From NCBI RefSeq assembly GCF_040938485.1, contig NW_027271650.1, positions 248,001 to 312,000 on the forward strand: a stretch of DNA of 64,000 nucleotides. Direction: 5' to 3'. The notes below the pieces were generated by a model. The model searched no databases, was not told the DNA's origin, and saw only the letters and a list, made by a program, of their open reading frames with translations. This DNA is from Diadema antillarum (lineage: Eukaryota). Both the position numbers and the translations under genes were made by a program. Every line of letters begins with the position of its first letter. The stretch's first letter is position 1. Shown here one piece after another: positions 53,325 through 63,792 of this stretch.

Positions 53325-56300
53325 TTAAAGGGCCCTGCTGTCAAAGCAACCCTTTATCTCTTTATGTACCATGGTGTGCCATATTATTCTGAGACAGCAA
53401 TGTGGTCATCCATGCTTAAGGAAAACATTCTGTTTTTCAAATCTAAGTAACTTTAATAGATTTTGTTACCATTGGAATGCAATACGCAAAGTTGCAGAGA
53501 AAATGTCAAACCTTGATTTGATGTAAATAGCATGACAAATCTATGATTGTTTTTCTTAAAAATGACCAACAAAAATGACCAACAAATGGTAACTACATTA
53601 TTGAAAGGGCATGACTTGCACAGAAAACAGTGACAGAAACTAGACATCACTAGCAAAACCACTAGGGAATACCGGTTGATAGACAATCAAAACATACAAT
53701 ACATGCTACATGTGGCAGGAGCGGTACTGCCAGAAAAGCTTTCATTGTACTGTGGTGGCATTTGGCGATTTATCGATCGATTTGGGCGATTTGTGCATTT
53801 GAGCAGAATATGCGACCTTGGCACATCATCGACTGAGTCGGATGTGCGAATGTGGCACATAAAGAGTTAAGGATGTAGCCATCTAAACTCTCTGCCTGAA
53901 AGGTAACATACATGATGGGAACTGATTCCAGATATCACCAATGGTTGTAATATCTTATATCACTATCCATCACTGTACTCTCTCACGTCCTACACAAGCT
54001 CAGTTCTTGCTAATTATCAGCAAAGATTAATCAAGTTGTAAATTGAATGATTGTTCAAATATAGGTCAGGATGTAACCAAGCACTACTCACTACAGCAAA
54101 CATATCTCAACAGTGGGCAACAAATGCATGACAGTGGAAGGCAGAAATAGAAATTATTACCCACACTTATTTCAGTGAGGAGGATATAACTTAGGTTACC
54201 AAGAAAACACATTGATAGGCCTAATAAACTCAATCTACATACATCCTTTATCACATAAGGAATGCACATTGTCAATGTGTACACACAAGTTAAGGCTGAT
54301 TTTTTTTTTTCACACAACTTAGTTAAACTTGTAACAGAAACAAATTTCTTAATTTAATCATGCACAAGACCAAATGGTGAGTCCAAAATAAAATGATTGA
54401 AGATCAAGGCATAACAAACAAAAAATTGTATATCAAATAAATCTCATATCCTCTGCAGTCATTCATCTTTTCCGTTCAAATATACTAATATACTGCAAAT
54501 TTCAAGAGAGGGCTAGTGGCCACATTGAAGAATTTCTTAAACTCCATCTACAATTGTCCTCCTTTCACGGTCCAGGCAAGGGCAAAAACCTGTAAAACTG
54601 TATGTAGTCTGATTGTATCTTTAATTATGATGTAACACATATCTTGAGGAGTAATAACGGACATTGGTGGACAACCGGTCTTTACGTTTGGTAACATTCT
54701 TTTGGTGGCAGGGGAATAAGTTCCTTGGAGGAATCATTGATGGTGAGTGAGTGCTAATTACTGTTGTCATGACAACCAAGATGTTTGTAATACCGCCACA
54801 TCTTCACTGAAACTCTGCGGGGGTGGGTTGCGGATGATGTATGTAACAGAAGGACATTTACACAGATGTTGGGCATACTACAGAACCATTAAAACTATGG
54901 GCTATGAGTTTCATCTAAATGTCCGACCTTTTCAAATCTTTCTGTACAATGTACTCTATGCACTCTGTACCACTGTCTATGCTTAAACTAAAGGTGTATG
55001 TAAAGCTACAGATCATAGGTCAATGAACAGATAGATACACAGATGGATGAATAGATAAATAGATAGATGGATGGATAGACAGTTTGACAGACTGATAAAT
55101 AGCTGGATACATGAGAAGGAAAAGTGTATGTAAAGAGAGAAAGAAATAGTGCAAGAAAGAGAGAAGACATAGCATGAATAGAGTTTGATGTTTGCACTTT
55201 TGATAATCAACAACAAAATCATCTCTGTCTGTGACTCTCTCTTTTCACATAAACAGCCATGAACTACTCACAGACTTGTCTTAAGATCAACATTGGTACA
55301 TAAAGTGCAATAAGTTTTTGAAAAAGAATAAGAAGTCCAGCATTGGGGCATTAAGAACAATATTAGCAGAGTACATCATTTTCAGTTTACTTTCAATGCA
55401 AACCTTGCCTCCCTACATTTTATTTACATCTTTACCATGACCAAGGATTGATGTCCTTAGACTATTCATGGATTTAGCAAGTAGCAAAACAGCTTGCCTT
55501 GGATAAGTAGTGATATTTGGTCCATACATAGTGTCACATTGACATACATGTAGTTAAACTAGAATGTGAAGCATGCAACTTGGTGTAGGAGTCATAATCA
55601 ATGAACTACAAATTATAATGTCAACTACAGAAAAAAAAAATTCATAGAAAATATACTCAAAATACTATTAAAAAAAAATGACTTTAAGGATGTCACATTT
55701 CCTTTTATCCATAAGTTTGATAATCATGCGATGATTCTTTATATCCAGTCTTCACTCACCTTGGTGACAAAAATATACTTGTTTTTGTGTCAGGGTAAGA
55801 AGCGGAGATGTTGATGCAGGAACCGTTTGTGGTCAGTGTAATTAAACACACATTTACTTCAATTTGTGGTTTAAAATCAGAGGTGCTACTCTGAATATGC
55901 AAAAACTGAATTATCAAAGTTGAGACAGTTGCTTATTCTTTACAACTATGTCACAATACTATCGCCTGCAGACCAGCACAGCATTGACAAGTGCCCCTAC
56001 AACCCACCATCATCTACATGTACCCCTATCCATCCTTTGTAGATTACATGTATGTTCAAAATAACTGACCCGATCATCCTTCTTATCAAATATTACTGTA
56101 AAAACTCAAATGGTGGCTGTGTTATTTCATTTCCACAGTAGACACTTGGCAATGCTGTGACAGTGCACTGCGTGGTGAGGTCTAAATCGACACAGTTTTG
56201 TTGATTTTCTAAACAGTTGTTACGAGTTGGGGAAAAGAAATATCAAGTGTTGCTGCACAGTAACTCTGTATTACTAGAAGTGCACAAGTGAACCAGCAAA

Positions 56301-57157
56301 AGTGTGACCCTGCTCTGCGTGTTGCGTGTGGGTGTGTAAGATCACCTCATTCATTTGCACATAGCGTACTGACCTGACTGCTAGCAACTAAATTTTTACA
56401 TGTATATGCAATAGAATAGCCTCAGCATACCTCGCAACCATTCTTCTGGCAAGACTAGGTTTTCTGACTACGCATGTAATACATGCCATCATCAAAGTCA
56501 TCACAGGTGCTTTGTCGTAGTTAACTCTTTTTCATAACTTGGATAAAAGGACTTGAAACAGGCAGTGAGGAGATCGACTTAAAAAAAGGTGTTTTTATTT
56601 CTAATTCCCCTGTGCAACTGAGTAAAGACAAAACAACCCCCCCCCCCCTCATTTCTCCAGTGAATAGAACAACATTTTGCAAATAACGATTTGTGAGAGG
56701 CGCACATATTAGATGAATTAAAGGAGAGTAACTTAGGAGCAGTCAGTATGTTTCCCTGGCACCATGCCTCAAAAGATATAAGATCTGTACAGTATACAGT
56801 GTACATGTATCTCACATTGTGACTCTTATTGAAATATTCACACTAGTTAACTTGTGGCCACATGGAGAAAGTACATCCTTACATCACATAAAATAGAGGG
56901 CGCCTTTAACAATCCAGTAAAACATTTCAAGGGAAAATGTCATCAAGAAATCATTTTAAACATTCAAAGCTTAGCTCAAAAACAGTCTCTTCTCAACTCT
57001 GACTCATATCCAAGTGGTGCGAAAGATTTCATGGATATGGGCAGAGCTCGGAAAGAACGACGACCACCTTTACAATAAATATGACAGGCAAGCGATACAG
57101 AGCAGGATATGTTCGAGGGTATTCTGTACGACTCTATAGGGGCTCACAATTCCAACC

Positions 57158-59615
57158 TCAGGATTTCTCTGCTGCAGTTTCAGCAACGTCCATAGCCTCC
57201 TCCCCCTCTGCCTGCCCCGACCATCGCAGTAGTAGCTTGTGAATATCTCTGTGGCCCATGTCTGCGGCTAGCTGGAGGGGCGTGATGCCATTCATGCTTG
57301 CCGCGATGTCAGCTCCCGCGGAAACCAGAGCCTCACTTGCCTCCAGATGACCTGCACATGGTGAAACATGGAAACAATTTTGCAATCATTGCTCTTCTGA
57401 AAAAGATACAGCATCCCTTTATATGCTCATTATAAAATCTAGAATTACAGAATGTAATTCTTGCTCTTCTTTCGTTACTTTATCAACCATAAACAGGAAT
57501 AACTCTCATCAAATGGAGAGAAAATAATGTGTTTCTATCCAGTAGATGCTTGAAAAGAAATGCATTTAGAAAATTTGTTGGAGTTTGAACCTTACTTCAT
57601 CGAAAGCACAATGAAACACAGGCCAGAAAGGAAGATTGTCACACATCAGAAGACATCCATGAACCCTTGCATATTAAAGTCGAGATCACTATGTAATGTG
57701 GTGTCCTTCATAATTTTGCTGCTTACTTCAGCAGATTTCAACAGCATTGTTATCTCTAACTGGTCAGGTTTTGCTCTTAGGATGTGAAAAACCTGTCAAA
57801 ATTGAAGGATCAGTCCCTGCCTGTGCATCGGCAGTGTCTCACCTTGCATCACTGCCAAGTGAAGAGGGGTGGCGTCATCGCATTGAGGGTTGGGAATGTT
57901 GACGTCGGCGTTGCCTCGCGTCAGGAGAACCTGTATGCTGTCCACATAGTTCCAGTTGGCTGCCGTGTGCAAGGGGGTGTTGCCAGACTCCCCCGGCTCG
58001 TTGACTGGCAGGAAGTCTTTATGCTGTGAAGGAGAGAGAGAGACCAATTACATACAGAAATTATGCAATAATTACACCAAGCATTATGTACCGATCAAAT
58101 CTCTATTTAGTGCATGTGTGTGTTTGAGAGGGGAAGCGGTGGCTGAATATGCATGTCTAGATATGTTATCTATGCTTTAACAATTGCAATAAATTGTATA
58201 CAGTGCTACACCCGTAGCTTCTAGAGTATCACCTGGGCAATAATAAGTTTTATCAGCTGAAAGTAGACTGTACTTCAATTGCTACCTGCTAATTTTTCGT
58301 AATTGCAACATTTAGGTATTTTATTTCTTTTTTTTTCAGAGTATCCTTCGAATATGTTTCAGATTTCAATAGTGTAGGTTCTCTGTCTTCACTCTTTTAA
58401 ATGATTACAATCACCTTTCTCATCTGTTTGTAATCTCATACCTTGGTTATCAGGTAATGAAGAGCGTTACTCTGATTCGCCAGCACTGCAGCAAACGTCA
58501 AAGTTCTATCGTGATCATCCCGGACATTGGCTTCACCCTCCCGTCCCTAAGAAAGTAGTAGATGACACTAACATAGCCCTTCTTCACAGCCGCAAAGAGC
58601 CGATTTTGTGCGACAAACTCAGCACTATCTCCCACTTTGGCAGCACTTTTCTCTCCAGCCAAACCGGCATTTATACTTCCAGTGACCCGCCTGTAGAAAC
58701 CAACAATACTGGTCCAGATGCTAAGGAGCGCGAATGCACGTAGAGCCAGCAAGCATTGCGCGTGGGTACGGTTTCTTGTCGACACTCTCACTGCCGTCAG
58801 GAGTTGCTTGTATGCCTGAGTCTTTTGAGACGTTATCGTGTCAAGGATATCGAGGAAAACATGAGGTCCCTGCCCGCTGCACAGTTTGGTGGGGTACTCC
58901 TTCAGGATAGCAGTCATAATTCTGTTCAAGTCAGCAGGGCAAACTTTACCCTCCTTGTAGGCATCCCCGAAGGCCGCCATCAGTTCGTCAGCAATGATGC
59001 CAATCTCCAGTTTGTAGATCTCAAGACGCTGGTTGTCTGGGAATTCGGTCAGCCAGAACTGGGCAAAGTCCACAAAGTGATCCACGTCGCTGCACCAGGA
59101 CGTGAGATCATTCAGCATGTCAGTCGTCCGCTGGAGCCACTCCTTGACCACGTCCTCCGCGATGAACTGCAGGATGGTGTCGAAGTTAGTCTGGGCTGCT
59201 TCTCCGCTCCCAGACTTGTCGCTGCCTGAGCTGCTGCCCGAGCCAGGTCTCGACGTTCCCTTGACAGGCGGAAGAGGAGCCACGTCTTTGCGGAAGTTGA
59301 ACGCAGAGTTATTCGAGAGAGACTTGCTTTTGGCCGACTGGGGGCGCTTTCCAGATCTTGCCCTGGCTCCTCCCTTGTTACCAGGTGGGGTCTCGGCACG
59401 GCAAACCTATCATTTGTAACTCTCTGATGACGCCCTTGGTGGTCGGGCATCTGAATAAAGTCTCCATTTCCACCAATTCCACTTGACTTTTCACCATAGA
59501 TGCTTAAAGAGCTGAGCGGTCTGGAGAGATCTAAGTCATCCTCATCATCGCTGTCCCTTATTGTCAGTCTAGACACGCAGATGAGATCTCGCAAATCCTT
59601 AACACTACGAGTCAT
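57158..59615 (-). CDS. FAM220A-like: FAM220/SIPAR-like domain + ~5 C-terminal ankyrin repeats, ~516 aa; two 1-nt frameshifts in the assembled large exon
   Basis: Exons 59615-58442 (1174 nt; adding 2 nt gives 392 codons), 58023-57843 (181 nt), 57351-57158 (194 nt), GT-AG with matching phases. Ankyrin motifs GNTPLHTAA, ATPLHLAVMQGH, GITPLQLAADMGH. Segment 58923-58720 (RIMTAILKEYPTKLCS...FLDIL...YKQLL...LLALRAF) matches the C-terminal conserved part of human FAM220A as I remember it. Start codon (AAGATGA) is inferred. Confidence 0.75.
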
Positions 59616-59722
59616 CTTGCAGATATATGTGTCACTGAGAAACTGGAAGGAAAATCTGACAAGAAACTCGATGCCAAAGTCCTTGCCGTATAAATTTAAA
59701 TGCAGTTGGAAAGGACAGTGCA

Positions 59723-61514
59723 CTATCCGATTTGGACAACATTGATTTGAAGTTGGAGACGTACATCACATGCAAGCAGACCCAGGAAAACAAAAGTGGG
59801 AATTCGCAGACGACATCTGTATGCCAAGTTAAAGAAGAAGCTCAGTGTTCTGGTTAACATTGGGAACGGAGGCTCAGATGGAATGCGTGTCTTGATGGCA
59901 TGCTCTTGACGATTCCGGTAGTATTGCAACAGCCTGAAAATTATTCAGAGGTGTAAGAGAGAAGGACAATGACAGAGTGAAAGTACTGTACATTGTAATA
60001 ATGATACTCATAAATATTTGAAAGTTTGATGAGAAGATCCAATAAACAGCACAGTGTGATAGTAGATTTCTATACCAAATTATTAAGAAACTTCAAAGTG
60101 AAAGGCATTAGCTTTACATAACATACAGCCTTTTGTTGGTAATTTCTAGACACGTAATGCCATCAACAGCAATTGGAAGACAGAGATACATGTAATGTTG
60201 GAAATTGAGAGTACTTGCATTAGGCCGAATGTAGTTTGTGCTGGATATCTTATCACTATTGGATGAATCAACACACACACACACACTGATAACAGAAGGT
60301 ACTCCATCCAACTGGATCAATGCAGTAATGTCCAACGATGTAAATGGGCATGGGCATACACAGATGTTCCATAAACTCCACATTGTACCTGTTAACCTCA
60401 ATGTTTACTCGTAACTTTACTCCTTTCATGTGTATACTTGGGTGACCCGCACCTTGCCATAGTTAATGTTTATGCATATTTGAATCACATTTCGTTACTG
60501 AAATTCTATGAAATCCCATGTACATGGTGGAAAACTGCTCTAAATTCCAATGGAACCACCAGCGCTCCCATAGACTAAAGCACGTAAAAGACGTGTGCGG
60601 GTGACAGTGATGCTCCCATAGACAAGCACGTAAAAGATGCGTGCGGGTACTTACAACACGTAATCCCAATATAAATTTCAAATTTTCCCACAGTTTGCTT
60701 GTTTGTGGTAACCCTGTCAAGTTTCAGGCTTTTTAAGGGATACTGAACACAGTCCCGGGCATAAATTTTTGTTCAGTGTGCTTGTAGCAATCTTAAGCCG
60801 GGTGGCGGTATTCGGGCCCCTGGCGAGGTGCGGGCACCTCACTATAGACCTACTCAGCAGGGTTATTTTCAAAAGGCTTCTTCAAAACATGAAAATGTGT
60901 ATCATTTGCTCATATCCACTGACCAAGACATAACTTTTCCTCAAGACAAACACTGATGCCTATCACATCAAACTTCCAGCTGCTAGCTGTACATGTGATG
61001 ATGTGATCAACTTAAGTTCAAATCAAGGGCCAATTTTATTTTTTTTTTATTTTTTAGTTTACGTGTCCTGCTTCAAACACCCACTAGGAACTAGCATGTC
61101 AAAAAGAGCAGATCTCTCGTCAGGTACTGACTGACAATGCGATGTGACATAATCTAATTTTGAATTATCCATTGGCGTACAACAGAAAAATTTATTGCAC
61201 ACTTTACCACATCACATGATAGTGCCATGACATGATTCATTGATTGCCTTTTCACAATGACAGTACACATTGACACTGCACTAACACAGAAAGGCTAATT
61301 TGGGACTACACTAACACATTAGAACGAAATTGCTGTTTTCCCTCTCAGTAAAGCTTTATATAAACTCAGCAGTTTTCAACCCTATCCGTAGATCATTGCG
61401 ATAATTAAGGCTAACTTCTTCTGCATTTTAATCACATGAAACACATTATTCTATATAGAGGAAGGAAAGGTAAAGCCAACGAAAAGCAAAGAATGTCAGT
61501 TACCAAGGAGCCAT
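59723..61514 (-). CDS. SMIM10-like: SMIM10-family microprotein (73 aa), spliced upstream ORF of the FAM220-ankyrin transcript
   Basis: ACCATGG Kozak start at 61514; exon 61514-61504, donor GTAACT, acceptor ttttcag|G at 59933, stop at 59723. Product MAPWLLQYYRNRQEHAIKTRIPSEPPFPMLTRTLSFFFNLAYRCRLRIPTFVFLGLLACDVRLQLQINVVQIG. LTRTL..FF.LA.R.R...P.F.........VRLQ..I is an ungapped match to the SMIM10 core as recalled. The core lies wholly in the second exon; the exon-1 join is predicted. Confidence 0.75.
60564..60650. repeat. ~48-bp tandem duplication (gctcccatagac..aagcacgtaaaaga..gtgcgggt)
   Basis: Two adjacent imperfect copies. Confidence 0.7.
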
Positions 61515-61636
61515 GGTATCGTCAACGGGCCTCGGAAATGCCGTGGAATGGTTTCGCGCCGTACATATGGATCAACTGGACCGGTATATAGATCCTCAGA
61601 AAAGACGTGAGGGCATTCATTGGCTGCAGAGTGAAA

Positions 61637-61667
<31 letters not shown>

Positions 61668-61700
61668 CTATACCGAACGCAGGGCGGTGGAAATGGGATG
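61505..61700 (-). promoter_or_regulatory. Putative promoter/first exon of the SMIM10-FAM220 unit
   Basis: Locally CpG-rich; on the minus strand CAGCCAAT (~61619-61626), CTATATA (~61583-61589), then the Kozak ATG and donor; 31-nt G run at 61637-61667. Confidence 0.5.
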
Positions 61701-63792
61701 TGGGTCATCACAGCTCCCAGGGCCCCCTCTTTTCGTTTGTATGAAAATCGAAAAAAAAAAATCATCCAAAATTAAAAAAGGAAGAAAGAAAGAACTGGGC
61801 CCCGTCTTATAATGCCTTCAAATCAATCACAAGTCCCCAAATCAATCGCAACTTGCATTGAAGCTCACATAAAACTTGTGATTGATTTCTATCACAAGTC
61901 TTTATAAGACAGGCCCCTGGTCCAGCACTGAAGCCACCCCCCCCCCCCCCCCCCCCATTCCTGAAACGTTCTCCAGCCCCAGTTGCGATGGTATGTGGTG
62001 TTGTTGTTGTTGTTTTTGTTTGTTTTTTTTTTTTGCTGTTTTTTTTTGTTTTTTTTTTTTAGTTTTTTTTTTTTTGGGGGGGGGAGGTACTCTATTATAG
62101 CTTACCCTCCTTCCGTTGGCTCGTATAGCACCTCCCCCACCCCCATCCCCCCCCCCTCCTAAACACACACACTATACTGTACTCACCGACATTCTTCGGC
62201 CCCTGCAAGCACTGCCGAAAGATATTGTTCTTTATGGTCACTACAAATTCAAATAGGAGGAAATTCTTGTTCCGAACTCACATATAGAAACTATAATAGG
62301 CCTACTGAGAATAGAATTAACTTTTGACATGAAATAAGAATAAGAGGTTTCTATCTCTCTCTCTCTCTCTCTCTGTGACCAAGTGTGTTTGTGTGTACGT
62401 ATGTGTATGTCGAGTGAATCAGGAAACATCAAAACTAAAAACGGATCATGTAACTTTTAAACGATTACTAGTATAGGCCCTAACGCTGTTTCATGAATAC
62501 GATATTATCTATATGTAGGCACATAAACGTTACAAATTCTTTAACTTGTTTCCTTTTTTCTATTTTTTTTTTTTTTGCATATTGCATATATAGGTCACAT
62601 TTATACTACCTTTACAAGTTCTTTACCGTCTGTCTGCATTTTATATTTTTCCTTTTGTAGTATTTACTATACATCCGTAACTTGAACATTATATGAAATT
62701 GTACTTAAAAAAAAAAAACAAACAAACAAACACCGATTTTTATGCTTCTGTTGAGCCGTGTTTAGGTCTCCATAATCATAGTGCATTGAAAGGTGGGTAT
62801 AGCGCTTTTGACATCTGGTCGACTCGCCTTCTCTTCCTGTCTCTCTTGGTAGCTGTAATGAGTCATCATTTTAATCGCCAACGAGTGAAGCACAGAAAGC
62901 AGCTATAGTCTCGGCATATCTGGTGATTCAGTTCTCAAGTCATCGGTCCATGCTTTTCATTCATTGTCATTCATTCATTCATTCATTCATTCATTTTCAA
63001 TCTCCAACAAAAACATGAAAATGTATTGTTGTTTTTTTTTAGAAAACAAGCGCATATTGACATTACATCCCCAACAAAAGCAGGCAAACATGATTTTTAC
63101 AGAAAACAAGCGCATGATATTGACATTTCATCTCCAACAAAAAAACATGCAAATAGGATTTATTCTTTTACAGAAATTGAGTGCACAATATTGATATTTC
63201 AATGCAATAAACAGTTATACGTGGTTATATTCACAATTTCACACCTGCTGTTACTGCACTCCTATAAGGAGAAGGATCGGGGAGGAGGAAGGGGGGCAGA
63301 AAGGGAGAGGAAAATGATGACGATGAGAAACAGTGTTGGTGTAAGGTTAGGTGAGAGTCGCTAACGGAATGTATGATCATGATTTTGAAACAATGTGCCA
63401 AGGAAATATCTCAACTTGTTCGACGGACACGTCTGAAGCATGCTGTATAAAACCCGCAATTCATGCGAGTGACTTGCAATTCGAAAATCGATTACATAAC
63501 AGTGTTTTGACAGGGGTCTCGAAATGCGATGTCTTTTCTTGTTACATCCTAATCACCATGATCAAGCTGGAAGATAACACCATTAAAGGTGCTGTTTTGT
63601 TTAAACAACAGATTTACTATGGTAAAGACAAGGAAGTAATTTGCCGAGCTATCTCTCAGTCGCTGTTGCCACTAGACGCAATCATACCTGTGCCAGACGT
63701 TATTCAAAGCTGAGCTGACGCTTATATCCCGAAGTTGTGGACTCTCGGACGTTTACGGTAGACTCCATCACCTTCCATCGTTGATTGAAAAC

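Follow-up and report, generated by a model that had tools for sequence, protein, structure and literature searches.

We found that the sea urchin Diadema antillarum carries what is very probably the orthologue of the mammalian two-cistron gene SMIM10L3 (SAGSIN1)/FAM220A (ACPIN1, SIPAR). The gene lies on the minus strand of a stretch of 64,000 nucleotides (nt) from RefSeq assembly GCF_040938485.1 (contig NW_027271650.1, positions 248,001 to 312,000), hereafter called the window, whose first letter is position 1 in all coordinates below. It is predicted to be a single gene of four exons with two separate open reading frames (ORFs), the first a small ORF of 73 codons for a peptide of the DUF4560 (SMIM10) family, the second a main ORF of about 516 codons for a FAM220 protein with ankyrin repeats. 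The same arrangement was found in other echinoderms, in amphioxus and in a bivalve.

Anatomy of the Two Frames

The following features make up the gene.

61504 to 61514, minus strand: coding part of exon 1 of the small ORF, 11 nt (ATG GCT CCT TG)
59934 to 61503, minus strand: intron 1, 1570 nt, GT...AG
59723 to 59933, minus strand: exon-2 part of the small ORF, stop codon TAG (59725-59723) included
59616 to 59722, minus strand: spacer between the two cistrons, 107 nt, in the same exon as the small-ORF stop and the main ATG
58442 to 59615, minus strand: exon-2 part of the main ORF, start ATG at 59615 (MTRSVKDLRDLICVSRL...), broken by two 1-nt deletions
58723 to 59274, minus strand: FAM220 (SIPAR) domain, positions 86-271 of Pfam PF15487, 155.5 bits, E = 2.8e-45
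57843 to 58023, minus strand: exon 3, ankyrin repeats (Pfam Ank, E = 2e-12), acceptor AG at 58025-58024, donor GT at 57842-57841, phase-1 end
57158 to 57351, minus strand: coding part of exon 4, last ankyrin repeat, stop codon TGA at 57160-57158

The upstream ATG at 61514 stands in the context GATACCATGG (ACCATGG), and the minus-strand text at the start of the small ORF reads GATACC-ATG-GCT-CCT-TG|GTAACT, with the GT donor at 61503-61502. The acceptor of intron 1 is TTTTCAG|G, its AG at 59935-59934, and exon 2 runs from 59933. Joining 61514-61504 to 59933 completes the split codon TG|G (W) and gives the ORF of 73 codons. The initial annotation of the window had proposed exactly this 11-nt first exon, with its ATG and an in-frame splice leading to a peptide of 73 amino acids (aa), and all its coordinates proved exact. 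Intron 1 is 92% identical to the other copies of the locus in the assembly, with many indels. The DUF4560 core of the peptide, LTRTLSFFFNLAYRCRLRIPTFVFLGLLACDVRLQLQI, occupies approximately 59855-59742. The small peptide is predicted to be helical, as AlphaFold2 returned two helices with a mean predicted local distance difference test (pLDDT) score of 72. The label "integral membrane" is unestablished for it, because the hydrophobicity is only borderline for a membrane span: the best 19-residue Kyte-Doolittle mean of the upstream peptides was 1.2-1.7, and charged residues occur within the hydrophobic stretch.

The main ATG at 59615 has the context GCAAGATGA, and its frame begins MTRSVKDLRDLICVSRLTIRDSDDEDD. 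Residues 6-31 of this frame correspond to positions 1-26 of the Pfam FAM220 profile. Moreover, the N-terminal motif M-[ST]-R-x-V-K-D-L-R-[DE]-L-I-C-V-S-R-L-T shows almost no variation between phyla, which fixes 59615 as the true start of the main ORF. Exon 2 ends at 58442 (AAG|GT), and the exon blocks of the main ORF are matched by the Diadema setosum protein and by P0005, a protein derived from complementary DNA. The comparison with the FAM220/SIPAR hidden Markov model (HMM) that had been put forward for the region 59178-58690 gave the PF15487 match at 58723-59274 listed above. Thus, a FAM220-like ORF does open at 59615 within the same exon, with the FAM220 domain and the ankyrin repeats behind it, but contrary to the first description it is not one open frame in the window. 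In the AlphaFold2 model of the D. setosum orthologue, residues 1-141 are disordered, the FAM220 domain is entirely helical and predicted with confidence, and the ankyrin repeats form a stack. A fold search with this full-length model returned only ankyrin-repeat proteins, designed and natural, and nothing on the FAM220 domain. The name SIPAR refers to binding of STAT3 and promotion of its dephosphorylation.

The Small Peptide and Its Vertebrate Relatives

The window peptide matches Pfam PF15118 (DUF4560/SMIM10) over profile positions 27-64 of 64 with 29.8 bits (E = 5.5e-7), above the curated gathering cut-off of 27 bits. In a genome-wide six-frame search with DUF4560, the window position scored 28.7 bits; the three matches above the cut-off were redundant copies of the FAM220 locus, and four more lay below it. 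By BLASTP, the urchin peptide was identical to owl SAGSIN1 at 15 of 36 residues (42%, ungapped, E = 6e-8) and about 47% identical to flea, cricket and spider proteins. The initial assignment of the peptide to the SMIM10/DUF4560 family was borne out by the Pfam score and by the owl match.

We then used the ten invertebrate upstream peptides as a profile against 1.84 billion representative proteins, of which 277 matched at E <= 1e-3, and 30 of these matches were looked up. This invertebrate-only profile retrieved the owl "salivary gland specific protein SAGSIN1" (E = 3e-7) and the 84-aa "FAM220A isoform X4" of the marsupial Dromiciops (E = 5e-7). Further named matches among the 30 included uncharacterised proteins from spiders (three), leafhoppers (three), a flea, a cricket and a spittlebug; a named echinoderm, amphioxus or mollusc record of the peptide was found neither among them nor elsewhere in the databases searched. 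A feature search of the ESM Atlas with the peptide gave no usable match. A word search with the single peptide gave no candidates, and with the alignment as query it gave five proteins. The insect DUF4560 members (P0054, P0055, P0061, P0063, P0188 and P0194) have been annotated as independent proteins 92-140 aa long, in which an N-terminal core is followed by a long acidic tail rich in Asp, Glu and Ser that extends 40-80 residues past the core, and the spider members (P0042, P0043 and P0052) have 70-92 aa.

HGNC places the protein-coding gene SMIM10L3 inside the 5' untranslated region (UTR) of FAM220A and credits its first description, under the name SAGSIN1 and for mouse and human, to Ueda et al. 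2009; its four paralogues, SMIM10, SMIM10L1, SMIM10L2A and SMIM10L2B, are separate genes (PMC12807706). According to the title of that paper (Int J Urol 16:639), as cited by HGNC (PMC12807706), the mouse upstream ORF gives rise to a salivary-gland protein. The placement of SMIM10L3 by HGNC agrees with the initial annotation, which had named human SMIM10L3 as the upstream ORF of the FAM220A messenger RNA (mRNA).

Selection on the Two Frames

Between the window and the allele on a second contig of the assembly, C54, the small ORF differs by four synonymous and two non-synonymous changes, the latter both outside the core, and the ratio of non-synonymous to synonymous substitution rates (dN/dS) was 0.15. 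Between Diadema and L013, an RNA-derived contig of another echinoid, it was 0.10. Four further independent pairs gave proportions of non-synonymous differences (pN) of 0.11-0.24 and of synonymous differences (pS) of 0.79-0.87, the latter being saturated. Within the 47-codon core, the differences were distributed over the first, second and third codon positions as 8/2/21. Codon-level conservation of the upstream ORF, which had been proposed as a check, is therefore seen both in dN/dS values of 0.10-0.15 and in the bias among codon positions. Judged by this substitution pattern, the small ORF evolves as coding sequence under purifying selection, and the main frame is likewise under purifying selection. 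By sequence criteria, the upstream ORF is far beyond chance, because the Pfam cut-off was passed, the matches with SAGSIN1 were reciprocal and purifying selection acted at the codon level.

Conservation of the Pairing across Animals

With the intact main ORF as query, full-length FAM220-ankyrin proteins were found in Diadema, Lytechinus, Patiria, Acanthaster, Asterias, Antedon, four Branchiostoma records, Pinctada, Ylistrum and a marsupial, and the same search also found them in Logan, ENA and JGI contigs. The FAM220-protein tree had two clades, one of echinoderms, amphioxus and the marsupial and the other of bivalves and the Logan, ENA and JGI contigs, and it broadly followed phylogeny. The marsupial protein, P0029 (Petaurus breviceps FAM220A isoform X1, 478 aa), is an isoform with ankyrin repeats like the invertebrate proteins. 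Because this isoform carries them, the FAM220 plus ankyrin architecture seems ancestral. Placental FAM220A, which is short, would then be the derived form.

An HMM of three upstream peptides was run on 2802 six-frame fragments of ten FAM220 loci. A DUF4560-like ORF lay directly upstream of the FAM220 start and on the same strand in all ten loci, and it was the best HMM match in every one of them. The next-best matches anywhere in the ten loci had E values of at least 0.06. The individual matches included the following.

L015, Patiria, fragment 9568-9798: upstream-peptide HMM, E = 2e-17
L017, Branchiostoma, fragment 9205-9414: upstream-peptide HMM, E = 4e-13
L016, Antedon, fragment 9744-9938: upstream-peptide HMM, E = 1e-10
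L018, Ylistrum, fragment 9660-9860: upstream-peptide HMM, E = 3e-8
L020, contig, fragment 242-424: upstream-peptide HMM, E = 7e-26
L019, contig, fragment 424-735: upstream-peptide HMM, E = 3e-9
L021, contig, fragment 6-182: upstream-peptide HMM, E = 0.45 (weak); Pfam DUF4560, E = 4e-4

When the upstream peptide of each locus was scanned alone, DUF4560 was the top Pfam match (E = 1.2e-8 to 3.6e-4), and the peptides of Diadema, L013 and amphioxus were above the Pfam cut-off. In the reverse direction, starting from DUF4560-like proteins found by profile, FAM220 was located downstream in two of three cases. These were L022, an ENA genome contig on which a peptide gene (10001-10318) precedes FAM220 (11000-12421), and L025, with the peptide at 136-321 and a 654-aa FAM220-ankyrin ORF at 455-2419. 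Two animal-like contigs from JGI metagenomes, L023 (3300013843, positions 2247-2468) and L024 (3300013842, positions 1992-2213), each have a 73-aa DUF4560-like ORF whose sequence is close to the L014 and L020 peptides; both contigs stop 1.25 kb past the peptide ORF without a recognisable FAM220 start and are too short to tell.

The frame relation of the small ORF to the main ORF varies among species (0, 1 or 2). The two frames are therefore separate cistrons, and fusion or readthrough was rejected on the same ground. The order of the two frames is the same in echinoids, an asteroid, a crinoid, amphioxus and a bivalve, in line with the original suggestion that the pairing predates the split of vertebrates and invertebrates; the search of other echinoderms, amphioxus and molluscs that had been advised found it in the Patiria, Antedon, Branchiostoma and Ylistrum loci. 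Because order and close spacing are kept in deuterostomes and at least in bivalves, the sequences suggest that the two-cistron unit is probably as old as the bilaterian ancestor. The mammalian SMIM10L3/FAM220A pair was known before, and its occurrence in echinoderms, amphioxus and a bivalve is new as far as we searched; our literature searches returned no paper on invertebrate conservation of this pair or on the function of the SMIM10 family.

Evidence for Both Frames on One RNA

Four RNA-derived contigs from three lineages (L013, L014, L021 and L025) carry both ORFs. The echinoid contig L013 (run SRR6173504), whose main ORF is 65% identical to that of Diadema, has the small ORF at 1-222 and the main ORF at 418-1923. 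It is spliced, as its 501-aa main ORF corresponds to three exon blocks that lie apart in the Diadema genome. Its 5' end, G-P-W-I-L-A-H-Y..., matches Diadema (M)A-P-W|L-L-Q-Y-Y across the junction of exons 1 and 2. The small ORF of L013 is open from the first base, and no internal Met before the conserved core could serve as its start, which must therefore be in an upstream exon. In L014, L021 and L025 the FAM220 and ankyrin parts are contiguous, while introns split these parts in every genomic locus fetched, and L025 ends with AATAAA followed by a run of A.

One further contig, L020 (Logan ERR13265025), was rejected as RNA evidence, because with the standard code its main ORF terminates behind the FAM220 part. 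The 500-aa product P0022 (611-2113) of this contig reads in-frame TGA codons as Trp and is an artefact of alternative-code gene calling on a eukaryotic contig; under the standard code, the ORF starts from 665 and has 419 aa (P0026 from the same contig).

The spacer between the frames (59722-59616) contains no ATG in the window allele. A poly(A) signal within it, named at the outset as a sign against a shared transcript, was sought as AATAAA on the minus strand and was not found, and the next minus-strand AATAAA is at 56594-56599. Across species the spacers measure 59-715 nt and contain 0-18 ATGs, and the C54 allele of the same locus has one ATG. Thus, the 107-nt ATG-free spacer of the initial annotation is exact for the window but peculiar to this allele; because the C54 allele and other species carry ATGs, freedom from ATGs is not a conserved trait, and it was rejected as a selected feature. 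Between Diadema and L013 the spacer barely aligns (45% identity).

The two frames could also be two neighbouring genes that are transcribed independently, with a FAM220 promoter in intron 1 or in the spacer and with adjacency reflecting synteny only. The long (583-715 nt) and ATG-rich spacers of amphioxus and L019/L022 would suit this explanation, as would the annotation of the peptide as a separate gene in some records (spiders, insects and L022). However, the small-ORF stop and the FAM220 start are 107 nt apart in one exon with no AATAAA between them, both ORFs are spanned by the four RNA-derived contigs, the human small ORF is nested in the FAM220A 5' UTR according to HGNC (PMC12807706), and the marsupial peptide is listed by NCBI as a FAM220A isoform. 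We therefore regard two independent genes as very improbable.

Frameshifts and Redundant Copies in the Assembly

The main ORF of the window changes frame twice. Reading from 59615 meets a stop at 59112; a second frame (59283-58498) holds the FAM220 domain, and a third holds the first ankyrin repeat. Relative to both other copies in the assembly, the window is without one base at ~59389/59388 and one C at ~58531/58530. The locus is present three times in the 1.75-Gb assembly: in the window (55999-62499), in L011 (G000:C54:2743000-2752999) and in L012 (G000:C375:1-9000), the C375 copy sitting at the very start of its contig. These copies are 92-100% identical, introns included. In the C54 copy all 392 codons of exon 2 are open, and together with exons 3 and 4 they give 516 codons, the same length as the D. 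setosum protein, to which the C54 exon-2 part is 96% identical. The genome search with FAM220 scored 162.8 bits at the window and 175.4 bits over positions 1-271 in C54, where the match is one open frame of 435 aa. Three one-base insertions occur in the C375 copy only, and two of these fall within the small ORF.

Never more than two alleles were seen at any variable site among the three copies, which are therefore redundant contigs of one diploid locus; ancient paralogy was rejected on this ground and on the 92-100% identity. Over 59933-58950, C54 and C375 show no substitutions and three single-base indels, and over 58949-58442 the window and C54 show no substitutions and one indel. Four of the five single-base indels between copies adjoin runs of C. 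Because contigs of the same haplotype differ by single-base indels only, the frameshifts of the window are most likely consensus errors of the assembly, and from this comparison most or all of the single-base indels among the copies look like such errors. The copies follow a phase-switch pattern, in which the window equals C54 downstream of ~58950 and C54 equals C375 upstream of it. This pattern points to retained haplotigs and residual indel errors in the assembly, and false frameshifts would therefore occur elsewhere in this genome.

Alternatively, the window copy may be a decaying pseudogene or null allele and C54 the functional gene. The two frameshifting 1-nt deletions are confined to the main ORF of the window, and the one at ~59389 falls where the window alone represents its haplotype, as this explanation would have it. 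Against it, the three copies with at most two alleles behave as redundant contigs of one diploid locus, and same-haplotype contigs differ by single-base indels only, four of five beside C runs, as is typical of consensus errors. Moreover, the copy has no stop codons or bigger lesions, and its upstream ORF is intact, with only the four synonymous and two non-synonymous differences between alleles. A pseudogene or null allele is thus unlikely.

Proposed Translation and Function of the Two Cistrons

We propose that one capped mRNA would carry both frames. Scanning ribosomes would reach the upstream AUG, with its optimal context, first and produce the microprotein, and the FAM220-ankyrin protein would be made only via reinitiation, leaky scanning or isoforms without the exon-1 AUG. 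The upstream cistron would then serve both as a product of its own and as a brake or switch on the main product, a role in keeping with the title of the mouse Acpin1 paper, which suggests tissue-alternative translation.

A tentative extension of this proposal, possible but doubtful at present, is that the microprotein and the FAM220-ankyrin protein have been an obligate functional pair on one mRNA since the bilaterian ancestor. As members of such a pair, the peptide may bind or localise the FAM220 protein, or it may gate its synthesis via the nascent chain. Prediction of a complex between the full-length D. setosum protein and a 69-aa peptide gave scores of 0.00 and 0.01, which speak neither for nor against binding.

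The main rival to the proposed double role of the upstream cistron, as product and as brake, is that the small ORF is mainly a cis-acting conserved-peptide upstream ORF (uORF), whose nascent chain would stall or modulate the ribosome at or close to termination, the peptide itself having no separate function. The final ~40 residues, about as many as the ribosome exit tunnel holds, are the most conserved, and in nine of the ten peptides the conserved stretch stops 0-5 residues short of the stop codon. The peptide is also in cis with FAM220 across phyla, and in this genome the family occurs at one locus only (six-frame search, matches above the cut-off). On the other hand, vertebrates keep four stand-alone paralogues, SMIM10, SMIM10L1, SMIM10L2A and SMIM10L2B (HGNC, PMC12807706), and the title of Ueda et al. 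2009, cited via HGNC, has the mouse upstream ORF yielding a salivary-gland protein. The insect homologues (92-140 aa) have acidic tails past the core; because these long tails come after it, the insect core is not next to the stop. Both the separate paralogous genes of vertebrates and the C-terminal extensions of the insect proteins speak for an additional, independent role of the peptide, and an arrest peptide without any such function seems to us rather unlikely, although the two roles are compatible with each other.

Several points weigh against reading the locus as an old two-cistron gene translated from one mRNA. Protostome support with a named genome comes from one scallop. The evidence for one RNA stems from contigs of other species, and assembly from short reads may in principle have joined transcripts that overlap. 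The many spacer ATGs elsewhere (up to 18) would hinder reinitiation and leaky scanning, so translation of the main ORF may need other transcripts. Finally, the main ORF is interrupted twice in the window copy, and the ~59389 deletion may mark a real null allele, as no other contig represents that haplotype there.

Comparison with Known Systems

The urchin locus shares with mammalian SMIM10L3/FAM220A the two families, DUF4560 and FAM220, their order, strand and the leader position of the small frame, and the peptides are reciprocally homologous. In contrast to the mammalian pair, the urchin main protein has 516 aa with C-terminal ankyrin repeats, and the upstream ORF starts in a separate exon segment of 11 nt. 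The ankyrin-bearing form of the main protein is shared with starfish, crinoid, amphioxus, bivalves and one marsupial isoform. The stand-alone SMIM10 paralogues have the same DUF4560 core, L-[ST]-R-T-L-x-F-F-x-L-A-[WY]-x-x-R-x-x-x-P ... R-L-Q; they are separate genes, whereas the urchin genome has the DUF4560 family at the FAM220 locus only.

Upstream ORFs that code for protein are also known from further old animal genes, such as MIEF1-MP and ASDURF/ASNSD1. They likewise combine a conserved peptide ORF in the leader with a conserved main ORF, but their protein families are unrelated to those described here. The depth of conservation found here (deuterostomes and a bivalve) is at the high end among upstream-ORF genes. 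Regulatory uORFs with conserved peptides include that of the AMD1 MAGDIS peptide, that of the fungal arginine attenuator peptide and the plant conserved-peptide uORFs (CPuORFs). These have in common with the urchin small ORF a conserved C-terminal part close to the stop and linkage in cis; they differ in being usually shorter and in having no free-standing paralogues, whereas DUF4560 has stand-alone genes in vertebrates and insects.

mRNAs encoding two proteins are rare in animals, and most known microproteins from upstream ORFs are young or restricted to vertebrates. Here the anatomy of a documented mammalian case recurs in echinoderms, amphioxus and a bivalve, which implies that selection has kept the two frames together for over 500 million years. 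Such long retention favours a functional link between the two proteins. From this distribution, the free-standing SMIM10 genes of vertebrates may have branched off from an ancestor that was encoded in a leader, and the ancestral partner of the small peptide was probably the FAM220-ankyrin protein. If the two proteins do form an obligate pair, few two-cistron units of animal nuclear genomes would be older, and the function of the SMIM10 family as a whole would become approachable for the first time. For experiments on how the two frames are translated, the eggs and embryos of sea urchins are convenient material.

Sequence Upstream of the Small ORF

An ATG at 61566 opens an ORF of 15 codons (61522-61566, minus strand), whose TGA lies seven bases before the ATG at 61514; whether this ORF falls in the transcript depends on the transcription start. 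A run of 31 C on the minus strand (G on the plus strand) occupies 61637-61667, ~125 nt upstream of the small-ORF ATG, and a TATATA at 61590-61585 adjoins it. In this presumptive promoter region, both other copies in the assembly carry insertions of 6-7 nt.

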